From NCBI GenBank assembly GCA_025558095.1, contig JAIVFI010000030.1:124001-188000 (forward strand): a stretch of DNA of 64,000 nucleotides. The letters run 5' to 3'. This document shows, one piece after another, positions 4,837-13,548 of the stretch (the first letter of the stretch is position 1; each line of letters starts with the position of its first letter). The notes under the pieces were generated by a model that searched no databases, was not told where the DNA came from, and saw only the letters and a list, made by a program, of their open reading frames with translations. Position numbers and translations under genes: made by a program. This stretch comes from Hyaloraphidium curvatum SAG 235-1 (taxonomy: Eukaryota > Fungi > Monoblepharomycota).

Positions 4837-5215
4837 TCAGACACTGGTGACTTCAAAAACAAACGGTGGTAGTGTGTCGATGGAAGGAACAGTATTTGGG
4901 TGTTGGATAGCGCGAACTCCTTCAACTTAGGCGGATATACATTGCCTCTTTCAGCAAGAGAGTGTCCTTCAACTTTCCTTCCGTTCCGTTTCTCCAACTG
5001 CGGAGTCGCACGCTGCCGGGGCATCCACAACGACTCTGCACCACGGAGCTCTGTGCTCGCCTGCACGGGCGCGCATAGCATGCCGCGGTCCCCTTGCACC
5101 CCTGTCTGTCCGCCTTTTGTCCGCCGCCGCAGATGATTTGTCAACCGTCGACTCGACGCAATCACCGCCGCCGCGAACCATCCAATCCGATCCACCCACC
5201 ACAACAGCAGCAGAC

Positions 5216-5416
5216 ATGCCCAACAAGACGCCCATGACCGGCGACGCGGCTGCGAGGATCCAGTCGGCAACGGCCAAGTCAAGGGGGGCTGGCGATACCT
5301 CCAAGGACAGCTTTCCAGCCAGGGCGCAGGCGGCCGGAGCCAAGAACGAGGCCGGGGCCGGGAAGGAGGCCCGGGGAGGGCGGCAGGGCAAGGGCGCGGA
5401 GGGCGAGAAGAAGTGA
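5216..5416 (+). CDS. Small hydrophilic SMP/LEA-like (seed maturation protein-like) stress protein, copy 1
   Basis: MPNKTPMTGDAAARIQSATAK...DSFPARAQAAGAKN matches the short fungal 'MT..DA.RIQS...GFA.RAQ.AA.KN' pattern. Confidence 0.75.
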   Translation: MPNKTPMTGDAAARIQSATAKSRGAGDTSKDSFPARAQAAGAKNEAGAGKEARGGRQGKGAEGEKK

Positions 5417-5448
5417 AGTTTGGCGAGGGAAGGTGTGAGAACCTTTTG

Positions 5449-5761
5449 GCGGAGGCGTTGGAGCACCTCTGAATGTCCCTCTCGGTCCCAGGAATCCCAG
5501 AACCGGATCGCTTGAGCTTTTTCCACTCCTGCAGAGATCGGAACTATCAAAAATAGCTTGATTGCCGGGCTGTAGCCGCCCAGAGCACCTTGATCACGAC
5601 CGTCGAACTTTACCCTCGCCTGATCGTCCTCTGTCCGGCAACTTCTGCGATTCCGAGCTAAATGGCACAAATAAGAGCTGACTATCTGCGACATCCATCC
5701 CTTTTTTATCCCCGCCTGGGGTTGTTGTTGGTGCGAACTCCACGCTCGCGGTGTGAAATCG
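5449..5761 (+). repeat. Degenerate dispersed repeat, copy A (homologous to 13115-13443 and partly to about 6190-6290)
   Basis: Shared blocks such as ggagcacct, agatcggaact, tgattgccg.gctgtagc, ctgcgattccgagcta, ggtgcgaactc and cgcggtgtgaaatcg occur in the same order and orientation. Confidence 0.8.
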
Positions 5762-5964
5762 TTTTGGAGAATATCCGTATCTGTACAAAAAGGATATCAT
5801 CCCGCGCCGGCCGGTGGCACGTAGCCTCGCTTCCGGAAGGCGGTAAAGATATCAGTAGTGCCGCGAATACATAAAGTAGATAGGCGTTGACGCATGTTGC
5901 ACATGAAGGTAGCACCGCCGCGAACCATCCGAACCAACCCGCCGCACAAACCAAGGACCCAAAC

Positions 5965-6216
5965 ATGCCCGACAAGACGCCCATGACCTGCGGCGCCGCC
6001 TCGCGCATCCAGTCCGCCGCGGCCGAGGGCGGCGGGGATACCTCCGAAGACGGCTTTCCGGCCAGGGCTCGGGCGGCCGCGGCCAAGGACGAGGCCGGGG
6101 GCGGGAAGGAGGCCCGGGGAGGGCAGCAAAGCAAGGGCGGCGGAGGCGAGAAGGAGATAAGTTTGGCGAGGGAAGGTGTGACGTGGAGCATGGGGAGGCG
6201 TTGGAACACGTGCTGA
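5965..6216 (+). CDS. SMP/LEA-like protein, tandem copy 2 with stop codon lost (possibly decaying)
   Basis: MPDKTPMTCGAASRIQSAAAE...GFPARARAAAAKDE. Copy 1 has AAG TGA AGT TTG where copy 2 has GAG ATA AGT TTG, giving a 19-aa extension. Confidence 0.6.
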   Translation: MPDKTPMTCGAASRIQSAAAEGGGDTSEDGFPARARAAAAKDEAGGGKEARGGQQSKGGGGEKEISLAREGVTWSMGRRWNTC

Positions 6217-6440
6217 CCGACCTTCCTCTGCTCGAGAAGTCCCGACGCAGGATCTTTGAGCGTTTCGCACCTTTGCATATGGCGGAAGTAGCTCTTTTGT
6301 CGGCAAGGTCTGCGGTTCCGCTGCTGTTTTGGGCAGAACTAGGGCCGCTGGCGCGCGCAAGGACGCCGGGGATCCAGCCGGATCCGACCTGACTCAACGC
6401 ATGTGCCAGTGTTTGGACGCACCCCACCTGCCGCGCCCCC

Positions 6441-7158
6441 ATGCCGCCGCTGTACGCCGCCCTGTCCGTGCGCCTGTCGCGGCTCGTGCTCCCTGCCGTC
6501 GGCTTCTTCAGCACCGTGGCGCTGTTCCGGCTGCTCGACGCCCCCGCGCCCGCACGTGCGTCTCACAGCAGCCACCCTCGTCTCCTCGCCGGGCTACCTC
6601 GCCGGCGTGCTGTTCCACCGCCCGTCCGCGGCTGCCCACGCGGATCTCCTCCGGCGCTCGAAAGGGCACACGGCCACGATGATGGGGGACCAGCCCTTTG
6701 TCGTGCAGACGTACGCGGGGCGGTACCTGGGCCTGCCCAAGTGGTTCAACATGGCCTTCAACTTCTTCGACGTCGGGGGCTACTACGACCCCGAGCGGGC
6801 GAGGATCGTGCATTTCGCGGGCAAGTACAAGCCGTGGCTGCCCTGCGGCGCGTTTCCCGAGTCCAAGATCTTCTGCGCCGAGCCGCACCCGGCGATGCGG
6901 CAGTGGTGGGATGCCTTTGCCGGGGCCGCGCGGGAGCTGGGCCTGGAGGCGGCGGACTTTGCCAACTCGACGGGGACCTGCCAGGTTCTGTTTTCCGACC
7001 TCATGAATGGCGGCGGGGGCCTGCTCGGAGGCCGGCCGGGGCCGGAGGCGGCAGACCGGCTGCGGCGCCGGACAGGAAACGGCGACGGCGCCGTGGTCCG
7101 GGCCAGCGGCGCCGATCAAGAAGCGGACGAACCTAACTCGCCTGCATCCACGAGGTAG
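6441..7158 (+). pseudogene. GT8 (glycogenin-like) glycosyltransferase paralog with internal deletion and frameshift
   Basis: The N-terminal anchor (frame of 6441) shifts into ATLVSSPGYLAG|VLFHRPS...GDQPF...VHFAGKYKPW. The central DxD-containing region present in the 11.4-12.5 kb paralog is missing. Confidence 0.7.
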
Positions 7159-7293
7159 CTTGTAGGGACCAGGGCGCTTTTCGGTGTATCGGTTCTCTAT
7201 ACTGCGGCGGGCGGCTGTGATCCATCCCCCCGATATTATGGTCCGGCAGTCACATCAACGAGAAGACGAGCGGGGCTGTATAACGAAGACACC

Positions 7294-9264
7294 ATGCTGC
7301 GGCGCGGGCTGCTCGTGTCCGCGCTCGTCTCTGTAGTTGTGCTGCGCGCGCTGCTCTCTGCGGTGCCCGCGGGCGCGCCGGGCGAGCGAGCCGGCGCGGC
7401 ACCCGCGCTGTGCGCCCCCGGCACGGTGTCCGTCGTCGCCGCGTGCCGCGACCGCGCGGCCAACCTGCGGCGCGCGGTGGCCAGCTGGCTGCGCGTGCGT
7501 GGCGCGTGCTCGCTGACCGTCGTCGACTGGGACGGCCGCGACGAGCTCGGCGCGGTGGTGCGCGAGGCGCTGCACGGCGCCGGCGCGACGGGCGCGGAGC
7601 TGCGGGCGGTTGCGGTGCTGCGCGTGTCCCCCGCGCCCGGCGGCCCGCGCATCGCCTGGGCGCTGACGCGCGCCTTCAACGCCGCCTTCGCGGCGGACAA
7701 GGCGCTGCGCTCGCACGGGCTGCAGCACGGCGGCACCCTGTCCATGGCTAACGCGTCGAGCGGCCCGCCTGACAACCAGGTGCTCTTCAAGGCCGACTGC
7801 GACGTGCTCGCGTCGCCGGACCTCGTCGCCGCGCTGCGGGCCGCGAACTCGAACGGCTCCGCCGGCTCCGGCGCCGACTCGCTCGTGCCCCCCGGCTCGT
7901 ACGTCAACGTGCCCTGGCCCCTGCAGCGCAGCCCCAAGGAGCTGCACCTCAGCGGCTCCTTCCTCGCCCGCGCCGCGGACGTGCACAGGGCGGGCGGCAT
8001 GGACGAGCGCATGCGCGGCTGGGGTCCGGACGACCAGGACCTGTACCGGCGCATGGCGCTGCGCAGGATCTTCCCGCCCGTCGGCGCCCTGGAGCACATC
8101 CCGCACGGGGACATGGAGAGGCTGGCGGCGTACGGGTTGAGCTACCCGAAGCCGGTGAGCGCCTCGAGGATCGTCAGGATGCTCGCCGTCGCGCCCCCCT
8201 GGGACCCGGCGTCGGCTACCGTACTCCGCATCGACCGGGTCGAAACGAGTGGGGACGCCCCCGCGCTCGTCCTCGCCGAGGCGCAACCGGTGCACCTTCC
8301 CGCGGACCTCGACGGCTCGATCCCCCCCGAGGCTCTGCGCAAGATCGACGCCCAGGCGTGCGCCGAGGCCCTCAAGTTCTACGTGCTCGGTTCCGGCCCC
8401 GAGGCGCGCCGCGCTTTTTGCACCCTGCCCCGCGCAGCGCGCACGATCCGCTCGTTGGTGGCCGCCGCGCCGGAGCGAGGCAACGACACCGTGCTGCTCA
8501 CCGCCCGGCTCTCGGGCAGCCTCGTGCGGCGCATCGAGGGCCTCTCGTGCGCGCTCCGCAGGGCGCGGGAGCTGGGCTGGCACCTGCGCGCCGTGTGGGA
8601 GCCCGACGCCGATTGCGCCTCGGGCGCCGAGGACGTGCTCGACGCCGCGGGGCTGGACCTGTGGGACCGCCCCCCGGGCCCGGAGGAAGCCGAGCTGCTC
8701 GCGAACCGCACGCTGGACTTCCCCGACCTGGCATCGCTGGATTCGCGGGCCTTTGCGGGCGACCCGGCGTGGGGCAGCAGGGTGCGCGACCGCACGCGCG
8801 TTTGGCACGCATCCGCCGATCCCGGGCCGGGCTGCGCGGCTGGGCGCCCGGGCAGCCTGGAACCCAGCGCGGCGGTCCGGCAGGCCGCGGACGCGCTTCG
8901 GCTCCGGCTGCCCTCCCCTTACGACGCCCTGCACCTCGGCGCCGGCGCCCCCGACGGCGACCCCGCGGCGATCGCCCCCGCCTTCCCCGCGCCGGCGGCC
9001 TTCTTCCTATCCGCGGACGAACCCCCGGCCCTGCTCCGCGCCGCCGCCGCGCTGGGCCCCCGCGCGGTGCACTTCCCCCCCTGCGCCGGCGCCCGCACGG
9101 CGGAGTGCGAGCGCGCGGCGGCGGCGGCGCTGCTGCTGCTCGCGGGGGCGCGGAGGGTGCATGTCCGGGGGTCGGAGGACGTGAGGAGGGCGCTGAGTGC
9201 GCTGGCGGTGGGGGAGGGCCCCGAAATTGTCGGGATCGGCGGGGTGGATGGCGGGGCGGGGTGA
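7294..9264 (+). CDS. Type II membrane glycosyltransferase: GT2/GT7 (galactosyltransferase-like) domain fused to a degenerate GT-B/fucosyltransferase-like domain
   Basis: Intronless, 656 aa, N-terminal TM. Motifs: VSVVAACRDR, VVDW, LTRAFN, KADCD (DxD), GGMDERMRGWGPDDQDLYRRM (GT7-C). The C-terminal half has GSLVRRIEGLSCA..RELGWHLRAVWEPDADC and FFLSAD. Confidence 0.8.
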   Translation: MLRRGLLVSALVSVVVLRALLSAVPAGAPGERAGAAPALCAPGTVSVVAACRDRAANLRRAVASWLRVRGACSLTVVDWDGRDELGAVVREALHGAGATGAELRAVAVLRVSPAPGGPRIAWALTRAFNAAFAADKALRSHGLQHGGTLSMANASSGPPDNQVLFKADCDVLASPDLVAALRAANSNGSAGSGADSLVPPGSYVNVPWPLQRSPKELHLSGSFLARAADVHRAGGMDERMRGWGPDDQDLYRRMALRRIFPPVGALEHIPHGDMERLAAYGLSYPKPVSASRIVRMLAVAPPWDPASATVLRIDRVETSGDAPALVLAEAQPVHLPADLDGSIPPEALRKIDAQACAEALKFYVLGSGPEARRAFCTLPRAARTIRSLVAAAPERGNDTVLLTARLSGSLVRRIEGLSCALRRARELGWHLRAVWEPDADCASGAEDVLDAAGLDLWDRPPGPEEAELLANRTLDFPDLASLDSRAFAGDPAWGSRVRDRTRVWHASADPGPGCAAGRPGSLEPSAAVRQAADALRLRLPSPYDALHLGAGAPDGDPAAIAPAFPAPAAFFLSADEPPALLRAAAALGPRAVHFPPCAGARTAECERAAAAALLLLAGARRVHVRGSEDVRRALSALAVGEGPEIVGIGGVDGGAG

Positions 9265-9443
9265 AGCCGCGGAAGACGGGGGATGGGCACCTCCTTGTCT
9301 GCGTTGCCCGCCTCGCAGCAGGCCCATCCGAGGAAGTATCTCATCCTATTTGTGCACGGTTTCGGGACGCCCTTCGAGGAATGGCGGATCGATTGAGGGT
9401 GTAGGGTGTCCCGACGCGCTGAACCGCGCCTCGCACGGACGCG

Positions 9444-11352
9444 ATGTCGCAAACACAGGCGGCGCGTCCGGGGAGCGCCACTTACGGCGGCCTGCTTGTC
9501 TATGCCCTCCTCGCGATCGCCGGGATCCTCTTTGCCCTCCTGTGGCTCCAGTCCCAGGCCGACGTGCCGGCGGCGACCGCGGTTTCGGACGCTCTCCGCC
9601 CTCCCGGGGCTGCCCGGACAGCAAACTCTTGTTCGGGCGCGGACGCCGAGCCGCGCGTACGCCCCGCGGCGCCGGTGGCGCGCCCGGAAGGAACGGCAGC
9701 GGCCGGCGCACAGGGGCCCGCTGGGACACCGGCAGCGGCGGACCCCGCCTTCCTCGCCGGCAACGTCGAGAGGACCTACTACGGCCCCCTGATAAAGCAC
9801 CTGGCCAATTTCGGCCCGCCAGAGGCCGCGTGTCTTCCTTCCCTTGACGGCTCTGCGCCGGCGGTGTTCCCGCCAAAGAAGCGCAAGTTCGACATGGTCC
9901 TCATCCTGGCGCAGGGCCGTTCGGGCTCCACCACCCTGATGCGGCTGCTGAACACGATACCATGCTATAACATCCGCGGCGAGAACCTCTTCCTTTTCGC
10001 CAGGCTCCTGGGCAGCGGCACGCGGGGCGCGCTGTCTGCCGACACCTTCCGAGAGGGGGCGGTCAAGCTCCAGTCGCACTACGTGCATCCCTGGAACGCG
10101 ACCCGCTACGGGGAGCCGAAGCTGCCCAAGAAGCCGTCGTACTTCAACCGGTTCGACATGCCGCGCCTGGAGGACCTGCTCAGGCTCGTGGTCGGCGAGG
10201 TGCTCGAGCACGTGCCGGGCTACGTGACCTCGGGCTTCAAGGAGATCCGCCTCTTCAACCTTGACGCGTTCAGGTACAACGTGTCGGTCGGTTTCCTGGA
10301 GCACTGGACCGCGCTGTTCCCTCGGACGGCCGTCATCTTCGGGTACCGCGAGAGGGACATCCTGAACAGCGCGTGGTGGAAGGATTCCGACCGCGCGCGG
10401 ACGGAGCAGCTTTTGCAGCAGCAGCTGGAGTGGTTCCGGGAAGTCCACGAGCTGATAAAGTCCCGGAAGCGTTTTGGCGCCGGTGTGAAGTCCGCAATGG
10501 TCGAGTTTGACGACCTCGTGGCTTGCAACGACGGCTCCTCGAGCGGGTTGAAACAAGCGTACGACATGCTCGGGGAAACGTTCGACGCGGCCAGGTGCCG
10601 GGCGCTGATGGAGAACAATGTGGAGGACATGGGGCTGGCCGCTTCCGACGGCAACTTCAGAGACGAACAGGTCGGCGGCATGGGGTTCTCATTGGCCATT
10701 GCATCTGATGATTCTTTAGGGATTCAAGAACTGGTTCTACGGCTATCGGGAGCTGGCGAAAGGCAAGCTGTCCGACTTCAAGCTGCTCAACTTCAGCCGT
10801 CCGGTCGGGGACGGCACGGACGAGAAGGAGTTCGTCGGCCCCAAGAGGGACGGATCTCCGGATGAGGTCTGCACGATCCGGCGGGGCGCCCAGCAGCCTG
10901 CAATCCCCGATCGGGGGAAGGACCTGGCCTACGCCGCGTGCCGGCAGTGGCACGCGGACACGGAATCGGCCAAGGTCAGAATCGACCTCCAGACCCGCAG
11001 TGTGCCGGCTCGGTGCGCCGAGGGCGCTGCGCTGGTGCTGAAGTTGCTAAAGGACGGATCCGAGGTGCTGCACGAGAAGCGGTACGAGCTCGTTGATGCC
11101 GGTCGGGATCCGCCGCCGCCACCGTACAAGGTAAGCGTGGTCACCGGGCTGCCTAGGGGCACGGTGCTCGAGTTGTGCCTGGAGCCGAGGGTGAGGGTGT
11201 GCAGGGGACTTGGGGTGAGGATGGTGGTGAACCGGCACGGACCCACTCGGGGGGGCAAGGCTTCGGAGAAACCCCTGATTTCCCGTAGCGGCTGGAGCCG
11301 ATACCCACGGTCTCCTCCTCGAAGAGGACGAAAAAAGCCGGTAGATCCTTGA
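9444..11352 (+). CDS. Type II membrane PAPS-dependent (carbohydrate-type) sulfotransferase with C-terminal extension
   Basis: N-terminal TM; 5'-PSB loop AQGRSGSTTLMRLLN; IRGEN; GFKEIR; FP.TAVIFGYR...SAWW. Intron 10671-10719 joins to the frame ending at 11352. Confidence 0.8.
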
Positions 11353-11376
11353 TAATGTTCTAAAGCATCTGTGCGT

Positions 11377-12452
11377 TCACGGATGCGCGCTGCTGACCGA
11401 TGCTACTAGCCGCGATCCGCTCACGGCTTTGTAAGCATCTGCGTGTGCCCGAAACACCCTTTCAAACTCGATGACCACCGTATCGTTCTCGCCCGCAAAG
11501 TCTGTCTCGGTCCACCCCATTTCCCGGAACGCGGCGGCAAACTCGGCGTTCCACCCCTCCATGTAGGGGTGCTGCTGATCGCACACGGTCTTCGTCTCGG
11601 GATGCCCCACGCACAATGCCCAAGGCTTGAAGTTACCCGCAAAGTGGATCACCCGCGGCCCTTCCGGCCCGGGGTAGCCCGGGTGGGGGAACAAGGTTCT
11701 GTACTTGAGGATGCTGTTGTAGCGCGCCGGGACCCAGATGGCCACCCAGGCAAATTCGCGGACGAGGAAGGGCTGGTCCCCGTATTTGCCGGCCGAGTAC
11801 GTGCCGGCGCGCTCCACGAGGTTGCGGAAGCCGTCCTCGCCCGTCGGCCTGATCCAAAAGACACCAGCCTGCGAGAAGACGCCGTGAGCAAGACCGCGCG
11901 CAGGACGGGATTCGGGATCCGGCCCACGTTGAAAGCACCCGTGAGGGTCTCGTTGTACGGCGGCACGGGCCTGAAACTCGGCTCCAACACCGCGGCGAGC
12001 GGCGCGCCCGAGTCCCGCAGCACACGGAAAGGCACGTCAATCTCGCCCACAAGGTACGCGTCGGCGTCCATGAAGGCCACGGCGTCGTACTGAACCAGCT
12101 TGAAGACGTGCAGCTTCACCAGCATGTCCCTCCAATAGGGGTTCACGGCCACGGGGAACGGGACGGCCTCCACGTCCGCCACGCGCCAACCGGCTTGCTC
12201 GAGCATCGTCCTGTGCCGTGTACTTAGCGTGTTCCCGGGCGGAACCAGCGCCAGTCGGTCGCGCGCGGGCGAGTACCGCTGCAGCGTGCGCCCGAGGACG
12301 GCGGCGCCGGCGACGAACTCTGGGGCCGTCACGAGCGTGGCCACGGCCTCGCGCGGCGCCGAGAGAACACGCCCGGTGAAATACGCGCCGGCCAGGAGGG
12401 CGGCCGCCGCGGCAAGGGGGTACAACCGCCCCGTAAACAACGGGCGGGTCAA
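11377..12452 (-). CDS. GT8 glycogenin-like glycosyltransferase, membrane anchored (true ATG probably in an upstream exon)
   Basis: TM segment, ATLVTAPEFVAGAAVLG, KLHVFKLVQYD, FMDADAY (DxD), AFN|AGVF across an intron, GDQPFL, VIHFAGNFKPW. Confidence 0.85.
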
Positions 12453-13114
12453 TTGACTTCGTCCTCGTTGTGTTTGTCTACGGGCGACGACTCCGGCCCC
12501 GAACCAACGGCTGAAGGGGGGGCTGGCTGCAACGGCTCTGTGGCGCTACGGGAGGCGAGGGTGGTCCTTAAGGGGCAGGGCTCGGTGAATCGCGGTGAAG
12601 AGATCAGCGGCATGCAGGTCGTCGTGTCCAAGTCTTTGTGCCGCGATCCCAAGGTCTAGATCCCAAATCCGTGCTGATTTGCAAGGAAGAGAACTTTAAA
12701 GAACAGGCAAAAGGAACAGGCAATATTCGGTTTCTCTGCGGCACCGATGGGACACCACCTGTTCCGATGGGACACCGCCTGTTTGCACTGCCTCCGAGGG
12801 GAAGAAGAAGTGAGCGTCGGCGAGAGAGGCTGGTCTGGTCTGTTCTGGTATTTCCGTCGGCGTCGTAAAACACGAGGTAGATGGATGCCACTAGGTTATC
12901 GCGCCGAAGCGCTGTGTCCACCGCCGTCAATTCCTTCCCGCCAAATCCACTCCGCCATCGCCGCTTGGCGATTCAGAGCTCCGGATCGGGCTTCTTCTCG
13001 CGCACTTTCAAGGCCGGAGCCACGAAGGATGCTACCCATTTGCGAATCCGGGGAGGCAGGCGGTCATCATCCAGCTTTGTCGAAGGATCCAGTCGAAAGG
13101 TGGGAGAGATTGGG

Positions 13115-13443
13115 GGCGGAGTCGCTGGAGCACCTGCCTACTCTGTTCGCTCTCGGCCACAAGAATCCTAGAGCCGGATCTTTCGATCATTTTCACTCGT
13201 GCATAGATCGGAACTTGCTCAGATAGCCTGATTGCCGTGCTGTAGCGCCCAGGGCACCTTGTTTTCAGCCAATCATGCACCTCATTCTGCTCGCTTGATC
13301 GTCTTCTGTCGGCAATGTCTGCGATTCCGAGCTATACATCACACTTTAGAGCTGCCACTGCACAGCATCTATCATCCTCATCTTCCTCCATGGGTTGGTT
13401 GGTGGGTGCGAACTCTCCCCGCTCTCGCGCGGTGTGAAATCGG
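13115..13443 (+). repeat. Degenerate dispersed repeat, copy C (direct repeat of 5449-5761)
   Basis: Colinear conserved blocks with copy A (see that feature). Confidence 0.8.
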
Positions 13444-13548
13444 TTCAGCAGCTTCATTCCGAATTATCGCCGCCCCGCCGCACGCCGGAGCCCCGAGGCT
13501 CGCCGATTCCGCCGCGTGCCGAGCAGCACGTTGCGGTGGACGCGCGGG

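Follow-up and report, generated by a model that had tools for sequence, protein, structure and literature searches.

Do four neighbouring loci in a fungus encode a complete pathway for making a wall or matrix polysaccharide and sulfating it? The question is raised by positions 6441-12452 of the window (the whole 64,000-nt stretch of DNA analysed), for which the original prediction had proposed such a pathway in a fungus-like eukaryote. The host is indeed a fungus, the culturable chytrid Hyaloraphidium curvatum, with a genome of 31.9 Mb. The block comprises g1 (GT8), g2 (GT-A/NodZ-like, two-domain), g3 (Sulfotransfer_3) and g4 (GT8), and the close packing described for it was borne out: 135 nt separate the stop of g1 (7158) from the ATG of g2 (7294), 179 nt lie between the stop of g2 (9264) and the ATG of g3 (9444), and the stops of g3 (11352) and g4 (11377) converge, 24 nt apart. 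A hydrophobic N-terminal anchor is present in each of the four, as had been noted, and these families, with their anchors, agree with the expected glycan-type enzymes of the secretory pathway. The G+C content over 6-10 kb is 0.71-0.74, above that of the flanks. The features of the block and its surroundings are as follows.

5430..5764, + strand: left copy of a direct repeat that brackets the block; degenerate, and within tandem small-gene units (5168-5764, 5915-6320)
6403..12550: extent of the segmental duplicate (blastn; partner on contig C35, at C35:471.4-476.9 kb)
6441..7158, + strand: g1, GT8c-type pseudogene (by comparison with the intact paralog P0166)
7294..9264, + strand: g2, intronless, encoding a 656-aa type II protein (profile, fold search, homolog alignment)
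9444..10670, + strand: g3 exon 1, with signal anchor, low-complexity stem and Sulfotransfer_3 catalytic domain (profile, homolog alignment)
10671..10719, + strand: g3 intron, 49 nt, GT..AG, placed by the sequence, an RNA contig that ends at 10671 and the annotated paralog P0011, which joins ..EQ to GFK.. there; the joint is not directly observed for the window copy
10720..11352, + strand: g3 exon 2, with a beta-rich conserved C-terminal domain and the stop codon (sequence, homologs and a low-confidence model, CBM-like)
11377..11868, - strand: g4 exon 2, the GT8 C-terminal half (FNAGVFW join, HFAGNFKPW) and stop codon (sequence and paralog alignment)
11869..11927, - strand: g4 intron, 59 nt, GT..AG (joint 11867/11927 in two RNA contigs)
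11928..12452, - strand: g4 exon 1, GT8b-type, with anchor and DxD (DAD) (sequence and paralog alignment)
13097..13445, + strand: right copy of the direct repeat (72% identity with 5430-5764 across 354 nt)

The families originally assigned were broadly right by profile and fold, except that g1 is not an enzyme gene. Compared with P0166 (346 aa; PF01501 match, E 2e-10), g1 carries a 2-nt deletion near 6552, which leaves the signal-anchor exon in frame 0 and the rest in frame 1, and an in-frame deletion of 128 codons with its junction at about 6600-6607. The DAD motif of P0166 falls inside these 128 codons, and the DxD core is gone. The C-terminal part with HFAGKYKPW is kept and reached 27.6 bits against PF01501 in a six-frame search (cut-off 24.3), while intact GT8 paralogs scored 41.1 and 31.2 bits. 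With neither a complete reading frame nor a DxD motif, g1 is, to judge from the letters, a dead GT8. The second GT8 locus, g4, retains the motif as DADAY in exon 1, and scored 24.0 bits (24.4 with neighbouring matches in frame) against the same cut-off in the six-frame search. Reading of the sequence found no in-frame ATG ahead of its anchor, and where the alignment places the start codon of the paralog GT8b, an ATG, g4 reads ACG (12434-12432); initiation at a non-AUG codon is conceivable. The lesions of both genes are those of one assembly. The dN/dS of g4 against GT8b was 0.14 (0.14-0.22 between copies of the GT8b type), and the remaining C-terminus of g1 likewise has a low dN/dS against its paralogs. 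Across some 250 residues, g4 and the intact g1 paralog can be matched to PF01501 and to glycogenin-1 (the latter with E 1.4e-8), and they share DxD and HxxGxxKPW with glycogenin and the plant GUX/PGSIP proteins, the latter also having the type II anchor. However, scores were low, with E 1e-8 against glycogenin, g1 is without the catalytic core, and the search yielded no ortholog whose specificity is known.

The reading of g2 as a GT7/GT-B fusion agreed with the fold search. Residues ~43-330 form a GT-A domain of the GT2/GT7 type that resembles beta4GalT7 and chondroitin synthase (PF02709, 24.6 bits against a cut-off of 23, E 2e-5), and residues ~395-650 a NodZ/FUT8-like one whose motifs are degenerate. 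Foldseek returned beta4GalT7 (E 1.5e-7) and chondroitin synthases, together with NodZ (E 1.2e-6) and FUT8, and homologs of g2 give weak PF05830 matches. Of the 18 residues that are nearly invariant in the family, the GT-A half keeps 17, all but S81, and it also has the DCD motif. The NodZ-like half, from which most of the invariant residues have gone, carries G409S, N412R, R549G, G624V, S625R, S628E, S629D and F630V, at which 18-24 of 25 homologs have the other state; these fall in the nucleotide-sugar-binding HGLGNR block, the H-I-R arginine and the GS.WSSF block, and the fucosyltransferase-like half is probably inactive. Identity to any homolog is at most 33%, the closest being in the sister genus Gonapodya, and relatives also occur in red algae. 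Architecture and GT-A motifs are shared with proteins that combine a GT-A and a GT23/NodZ-like domain in algae and monoblepharid fungi (for example Gonapodya KAJ3342720 and Porphyridium KAA8497079), a family whose members are uncharacterised, but g2 has lost GDP-sugar-site residues in its NodZ-like half. The bifunctional glycosyltransferase PgtA of Dictyostelium is functionally comparable to these proteins. The genome has two g2-like loci, and the window holds the sole intact copy.

The putative sulfotransferase g3 scored 28.6 bits against PF13469 (cut-off 27, E 2e-6). Its language-model neighbours were Sulfotransfer_3 clusters (0.96), of which the nearest named ones are bacterial, and the AQGRSGST loop (5'-PSB) and the R..D...S.WW motif, with its 3'-PB arginine and serine, are kept in all homologs covering those regions. 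In a low-confidence model (mean pLDDT 55.7), the catalytic domain best matched the tyrosylprotein sulfotransferases TPST1 and TPST2, and also Stf1. The C-terminal domain, which is kept in relatives, matched CBM-type beta-sandwiches in the same model (E about 1e-4), and might weakly hint at a carbohydrate acceptor. With Golgi tyrosylprotein sulfotransferases and bacterial Sulfotransfer_3 proteins, g3 shares the Pfam family, a P-loop-like PAPS 5'-phosphosulfate loop, type II topology and its best fold matches; it differs from them in the extra conserved beta-sandwich domain, and profile searches matched it to no solved sulfotransferase. The homolog search located the family solely in Hyaloraphidium and a few other assemblies. 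The gene is under purifying selection, with a dN/dS of 0.20-0.38 against paralogs and 0.2-0.3 even against the outgroup paralog.

Transcription was followed in contigs assembled from one run, which is taken to be RNA from the presence of a splice joint; such contigs do not allow the expression of the members to be ranked or correlated. They cover g2, g3 and g4. Those on g2 (7921-8499 and 8607-8826) and g3 (9268-9623, 9863-10148, 10144-10671 and 10776-11336) are identical to the window, and no contig of this run lay on 6720-7919, which leaves g1 uncovered beyond 6720. On g4, depth reached 12519, and the bin 12320-12519 had zero reported differences from the genome. Contigs matching the window occur there beside contigs of higher depth that differ from it and probably derive from the C35 paralog.

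The block is not unique and is one of several paralogous copies. By blastn, 6403-12550 is a dispersed duplicate, 75-83% identical in nucleotides to part of a larger glycan-gene neighbourhood at about 470-486 kb of C35. Homology covers 6403-7042, 7292-7384 and 9461-12550; most of g2 (7385-9460) is without a counterpart there, and all that the C35 copy holds of g2 is its first 93 nt, after which comes an ORF found at least 86 times in the genome. Since g2 on C35 has been replaced by a repeat-element fragment and the window has kept it, the two loci complement each other. The parent locus also contains a GT2_4/GT92-like gene, a PS_pyruv_trans match and more GT8 copies. The order GT8c, g2, sulfotransferase, GT8b would predate the segmental duplication, and this order, with the extra glycan genes of the parent locus, upholds the view that the physical clustering is non-random.

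Abundance of such paralogs across the genome, named earlier as a condition under which adjacency would be expected by chance, was not what we saw. There are at least seven GT8 matches, at least eight Sulfotransfer_3 matches and the two g2-like loci, and it is because three such small families meet within 6 kb of a 31.9-Mb genome that their adjacency by chance is very unlikely. Synteny in relatives, suggested earlier as a check, did not extend to the cluster. A sulfotransferase locus at C35:378 kb is syntenic with two related assemblies, and the neighbours at the orthologous loci are helicase, ABC, mitochondrial-carrier and transcription-factor genes; neither GT8 nor g2 lies near the sulfotransferase in the two assemblies or at C35:378 kb, and neither a sulfotransferase nor a GT8 lies beside the g2 homologs of Gonapodya. 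By this comparison, the sulfotransferase of the cluster came from the non-clustered ancestral locus at C35:378 kb, and, since that locus is syntenic and free of GT8 and g2 in relatives, the cluster would have been assembled within this lineage. Its absence from relatives also means that conservation gives no support for a functional link.

We therefore read the block in the window as a half-decayed duplicate of a lineage-specific cluster of secretory glycan enzymes, with a proposed mechanism of sulfation, and give this reading a probability of about 0.55. The ancestral unit would have been GT8c, g2 (GT-A plus NodZ-like) and the sulfotransferase in one direction, facing GT8b, to which the parent locus adds GT8a, one more GT8 copy and the GT2_4/GT92-like and pyruvyl-transferase-like genes. 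A 6.1-kb segmental duplicate of this core would have moved to the window, after which the copies decayed in a complementary manner: the window copy lost GT8c (frameshift and DxD core) and the ATG of GT8b and kept the sole intact g2 and a transcribed, intact sulfotransferase, and on C35 the GT8s and that copy's sulfotransferase survived and g2 was lost. All products are predicted to be type II proteins of the Golgi membrane, oriented towards the lumen. The retaining, glycogenin-like GT8s may add alpha-linked hexose or uronic residues and the GT-A half of g2 a beta-linked sugar; the Sulfotransfer_3 enzyme may then move sulfate from PAPS onto that glycan, perhaps steered by its C-terminal beta-sandwich domain, to give an anionic glycan or glycoconjugate that is secreted or lies at the surface. 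A common sulfated-glycan product for the cluster is suggested by the signal-anchor topology of all members, by their clustering and by the weakly modelled CBM-like domain of the sulfotransferase.

The original prediction of an intact, self-contained four-enzyme pathway in the window can appeal to four adjoining loci of fitting families with short spacers, to the transcription of g2, g3 and g4, and to the low dN/dS of the g1 C-terminus and g4, but it does not survive inspection of the genes: g1 is frameshifted, lacks the DxD-bearing codons and has no RNA contigs over 6720-7919, g4 has no ATG before its anchor, the second domain of g2 is degenerate, and intact counterparts of g1 and g4 sit on C35. 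We consider it quite improbable. The same damage, to two of the four genes, could mean that the copy in the window is redundant and is being lost in its entirety, with g2 and g3 just unbroken so far and their transcription residual. The position of the block among tandem repeats, away from its original context, and the greater depth in one run of the divergent contigs that probably come from C35 paralogs would fit such a fate. Against it, loss of the only intact g2 in the genome would not be neutral if the gene is functional, its 656-codon frame keeps all GT-A invariants except S81, and the constraint on g3 holds even against the outgroup paralog; continuing loss of the entire copy is improbable.

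A serious, if unlikely, alternative is that local duplication and relocation made these genes neighbours and that they share no pathway; the sulfotransferase would then modify small molecules, lipids or, by tyrosine sulfation as in TPSTs, proteins, and unrelated glycans would be the substrates of the GT8s and g2. The resemblance of the catalytic domain to TPST1 and TPST2, the substrate diversity of Sulfotransfer_3, the ancestral sulfotransferase locus and its orthologs, which work without adjacent glycosyltransferases, and the restriction of the cluster to H. curvatum all point this way. Yet a sulfotransferase paralog was recruited between the GT8s and g2 and the arrangement was kept through duplication under purifying selection, chance co-location of the three families is hard to credit, the parent locus has further glycan genes, and the CBM-like domain would, weakly, suit a carbohydrate acceptor. 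Recent acquisition of the block as a foreign island, from an alga, a bacterium or a virus, is extremely improbable: the raised G+C, the bracketing direct repeats, the red algal relatives of g2 and the bacterial clusters nearest to g3 might suggest it, but g3 and g4 are both spliced, with spliceosomal introns, related fungi have the ancestral locus of the sulfotransferase in synteny, Gonapodya supplies the homolog nearest to g2, and the donor of the block is C35 of the same genome.

Returning to the half-decayed duplicate, the closest fungal parallels are gene clusters for exopolysaccharides and surface glycans, such as the galactosaminogalactan cluster of Aspergillus, and the pyruvylated-galactose (Pvg) pathway of S. 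pombe, in which secretory or surface-glycan genes are co-located and a charged product is expected; the pyruvyl-transferase-like match at the parent locus adds to the likeness. Unlike the H. curvatum cluster, these systems have no PAPS sulfotransferase and draw on gene families other than GT8, GT-A/NodZ-like and Sulfotransfer_3, whereas the H. curvatum cluster is duplicated, partly decayed and not conserved in the nearest relatives examined. All families in it are already known, half of the window copy has decayed, and its chemistry can be given only as a proposal. A literature search found no papers linking Hyaloraphidium with sulfotransferases and no biochemical evidence of sulfated glycans in H. 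curvatum. We hold it tentatively, as possible rather than probable, that H. curvatum makes sulfated, possibly pyruvylated, anionic glycans, secreted or at the surface, by a lineage-specific Golgi pathway, which would have been assembled by recruitment of a duplicate of a fungal Sulfotransfer_3-plus-CBM enzyme beside GT8 and GT-A/NodZ-like genes and, through duplication and complementary decay, is now split over two loci.

To our knowledge, sulfated glycans are not a known feature of fungi, nor has any membrane-anchored carbohydrate sulfotransferase been described from them. Early-diverging fungi may lack cytosolic sulfotransferases (PMC11677658). The g3 protein offers a concrete candidate. It is a Sulfotransfer_3 enzyme of type II topology that has a conserved beta-sandwich domain, was recruited to a cluster of glycosyltransferases and has stayed under purifying selection. 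The locus is a clear case of a eukaryotic gene cluster that was assembled, duplicated and then partitioned between its copies and, if true, the split Golgi sulfation pathway would be, as far as we know, the first genetically defined pathway of glycan sulfation in the fungal kingdom.

The original prediction had placed a sulfated-glycan gene cluster at 6441-12452 in a fungus-like eukaryote, and the host was correctly described, Hyaloraphidium curvatum being a monoblepharid chytrid fungus. Its genome comprises 31.9 Mb in 55 contigs, and the window has a G+C content of ∼65% and short, spliceosomal introns. The four genes were modeled as listed here, and each exon of the spliced genes g3 and g4 was used, by reference, as a separate query.

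6441-7158, plus strand: g1, GT8c-type; signal anchor in one frame, remainder in another
7294-9264, plus strand: g2, GT-A/NodZ-like two-domain protein; 656-codon frame without intron
9444-10670, plus strand: g3 (sulfotransferase), exon 1
10671-10719, plus strand: g3 intron, 49 nt, GT..AG
10720-11352, plus strand: g3, exon 2
12452-11928, minus strand: g4 (GT8b-type), exon 1
11927-11869, minus strand: g4 intron, 59 nt; joint present in two RNA contigs
11868-11377, minus strand: g4, exon 2

The intergenic spacers are as short as predicted: 135 nt between g1 and g2, 179 nt between g2 and g3, and 24 nt between the convergent stops of g3 and g4. The position of the g3 intron is marked by an RNA contig that stops at 10671 and by the annotated sulfotransferase paralog P0011, which joins the same residues (..EQ/GFK..), and both halves of g3 are conserved in two relatives. 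Public models of two sulfotransferase paralogs (473 and 548 aa; window 9444-10865 and P0003) run through the 49-nt intron and thereby lose the conserved C-terminal domain; the P0011 model, from a third paralog, is spliced, but its N-terminus looks truncated. Antisense ORFs over g2 and g3 (7255-8934, minus strand, 559 aa; 8919-10556, minus strand, 545 aa) are a consequence of the high G+C content and carry no gene evidence.

Lower bounds on family sizes in the 31.9 Mb were about 10 GT8 loci, at least eight sulfotransferase loci and at least two g2-like loci. From these counts, ∼1e-5 windows of 6 kb would be expected to hold all three families, as an order of magnitude. The physical cluster is real and non-random, its copies in the window and on contig C35 counting as one evolutionary event, not two.

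A six-frame search of the genome revealed GT8, sulfotransferase and GT8 matches side by side on another contig, C35. In blastn comparisons, window 6403-7042, 7292-7384 and 9461-12550 aligned with C35:471.4-476.9 kb, where the blocks lie inverted; identity is 75-83%, and the likeness extends through intergenic DNA. The gene order on C35 is GT8a, GT8b, sulfotransferase, spacer, GT8c, and the C35 copy of g2 consists of its first 93 nt only, followed by a repeated ORF.

C35:470-486 kb (wider region G000:C35:466000-492000): parent neighbourhood
Extra genes in the C35 neighbourhood: GT2_4/GT92-like gene, PS_pyruv_trans match, another GT8b-like copy, GT8c C-terminal fragment
L003:8822-9721 (L003 lying in the wider C35 region), plus strand: ORF of 300 aa in place of g2

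A Fungal_trans gene marks one boundary of the C35 neighbourhood, and PPR and BAR genes mark the opposite boundary. The 300-aa ORF has at least 86 matches genome-wide, many with stop codons, and its distant matches fall within 1318-aa open frames; a Pfam search with it gave no match, and it probably represents a transposable-element fragment. A separate 295-aa ORF on C35 shows a SAM-methyltransferase-like motif by eye only, its Pfam search being negative.

The window copy is flanked by degenerate direct repeats (5430-5764 and 13097-13445, 72% identity) and sits among tandem or dispersed units (5168-5764, 5915-6320 and 13097-13445) of a small gene encoding a short Gly/Ala/Lys-rich protein that starts MP(N/D)KTPMT, for which a Pfam search found no match. 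Pfam scans of the window flanks detected no more glycan genes and just one Exo_endo_phos protein; the remaining neighbours are unrelated.

Both GT8 genes of the window carry lesions. Compared with C35, g1 lacks 2 nt near 6552 and, through a second deletion that stays in frame, 128 codons (384 nt) including the DAD motif; this second deletion joins two ..AG motifs. In g4, ACG occupies the position of the GT8b ATG, and no in-frame ATG lies upstream. Both g4 and the intact g1 paralog are glycogenin-like GT8s. A word-indexed homolog search with the alanine-rich intact GT8c, confined to the 8000 candidates with the most words in common, recovered the query alone. Judged from its sequence, then, the window copy is half decayed. 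Since g2 is lost from C35 and just one other g2 paralog, a very weak one, occurs in the genome, each locus keeps, in intact form, genes that are lost at its counterpart.

Nei-Gojobori estimates gave a dS between the copies of 0.3-0.7. The dN/dS ratio was 0.29-0.38 between the sulfotransferase copies, 0.20 for g3 against the third paralog, 0.14-0.22 between g4 and GT8b and 0.17 between the retained C-terminus of g1 and GT8c, and g4 has diverged from the outgroup GT8a no more than GT8b has. By these low ratios and the comparison with GT8a, the lesions in g1 and g4 look recent, and g3 is under constraint.

Expression was assessed from the assembled contigs of one public run, which cannot rank expression. 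This run contains 48% of the sampled words of the stretch and represents RNA, because its contigs include the spliced g4 joint. Window-identical contigs cover parts of g2 (7921-8499, 8607-8826) and g3 (9268-9623, 9863-10671, 10776-11336). For g4, window-matching depth occurs alongside contigs of higher depth whose sequence departs from that of the window; the C35 paralog is their probable source. No contig covers 6720-7919, a coverage hole that proves nothing in assembled contigs of a single run. The contig at 9268-9623 begins 4 nt past the g2 stop and extends into g3, indicating either that the 5' UTR of g3 abuts g2 or read-through transcription. Another contig has a 52-nt skip at window 12050-12103, with GT..AG on the plus strand, within the minus-strand exon 1 of g4; the shorter side of the skip is only 27 nt at a likeness threshold of 90%, and the contig probably derives from a paralog.

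An exhaustive representative search returned 385 relatives of g2, the closest of which is a Gonapodya sp. JEL0774 protein (33% identity); another comes from Porphyridium purpureum. The Glyco_transf_7C match of g2 itself barely exceeds the cut-off of the Pfam profile, several relatives show GT2/GT7C matches, and two show weak NodZ matches. A fold search with the AlphaFold model of g2 (pLDDT 78.6) related the N-terminal half to beta4GalT7 and chondroitin synthases and the C-terminal half to NodZ/FUT8, so that the label "GT7/GT-B fusion" first given to this gene is a fair description. Column counts in a 26-sequence alignment showed that g2 retains the GT-A invariant residues, including DCD, and that its NodZ-like half carries substitutions at most near-invariant positions (G409S, N412R, R549G, GS.WSSF block); this half is probably inactive.

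The g3 product matches Sulfotransfer_3 in Pfam, its language-model neighbours are Sulfotransfer_3 clusters, and the AQGRSGST loop and R..D...S.WW motif are conserved in every homolog covering them. Solved sulfotransferase structures gave no match to g3 by sequence or by profile. We folded P0005, a natural full-length homolog, in place of g3, and obtained a low-confidence model (pLDDT 55.7). In a fold search its catalytic part resembled tyrosylprotein sulfotransferases, and its conserved beta-rich C-terminal domain resembled CBM-type beta-sandwiches (E about 1e-4); as the model is poor, both matches are leads only.

The nearest external sulfotransferase homologs (62-65% identity) occur in two Logan assemblies, where they are flanked by helicase, ABC-transporter, mitochondrial-carrier and lipase genes and, at the opposite end, by a fungal transcription factor. 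By tblastn, C35:378 kb, which holds the third paralog of H. curvatum, has the same neighbours; C35:473 kb, considered as the syntenic ortholog for its adjacent Fungal_trans gene, was dropped on this result. Neither GT8 nor g2 genes were found near the sulfotransferase at the two Logan loci or C35:378 kb, and they are likewise absent beside more distant homologs; a domain scan of two other H. curvatum loci (C9:780 kb and C41:270 kb) found only sulfotransferase domains. Gonapodya g2 homologs have no sulfotransferase or GT8 among their neighbours. It follows from these arrangements that the cluster sulfotransferase is a recruited duplicate and that the cluster was assembled within the Hyaloraphidium lineage and later duplicated. 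A foreign origin of the block was rejected because of its introns, the fungal synteny and a donor within the same genome.

One Gonapodya g2 homolog sits in a 20-kb run of glycan genes (L008, JADIIX010000020.1:191005-215610), comprising an Exostosin GT47, a GT7C protein, PS_pyruv_trans, a gene model joining TPT and a g2-like part, Methyltransf_21 and a nucleotide-sugar transporter. Near the P. purpureum homolog (L017, VRMN01000002.1), a Sulfotransfer_2 gene occurs at a distance of four called genes (about 4 kb), a proximity that may be coincidental in a sulfotransferase-rich organism.

The main rival to a shared pathway is that the sulfotransferase acts on a non-glycan acceptor, in the manner of TPST, and that the neighbourhood arose from duplication dynamics. 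The fold lead to tyrosylprotein sulfotransferases accords with such an acceptor. On the other side stands the non-random grouping of three families, whose members are plausibly enzymes of the Golgi lumen. The original prediction is borne out in part: the physical cluster holds, the window copy is half decayed, and joint action of the members in making a single sulfated glycan is a reasonable, still unproven idea.

A literature search found no paper connecting Hyaloraphidium with sulfotransferases or sulfated glycans, and cytosolic sulfotransferases may be missing from early-diverging fungi (PMC11677658). The locus belongs to a known kind, the fungal glycan-enzyme gene clusters, in this case one that includes a sulfotransferase.
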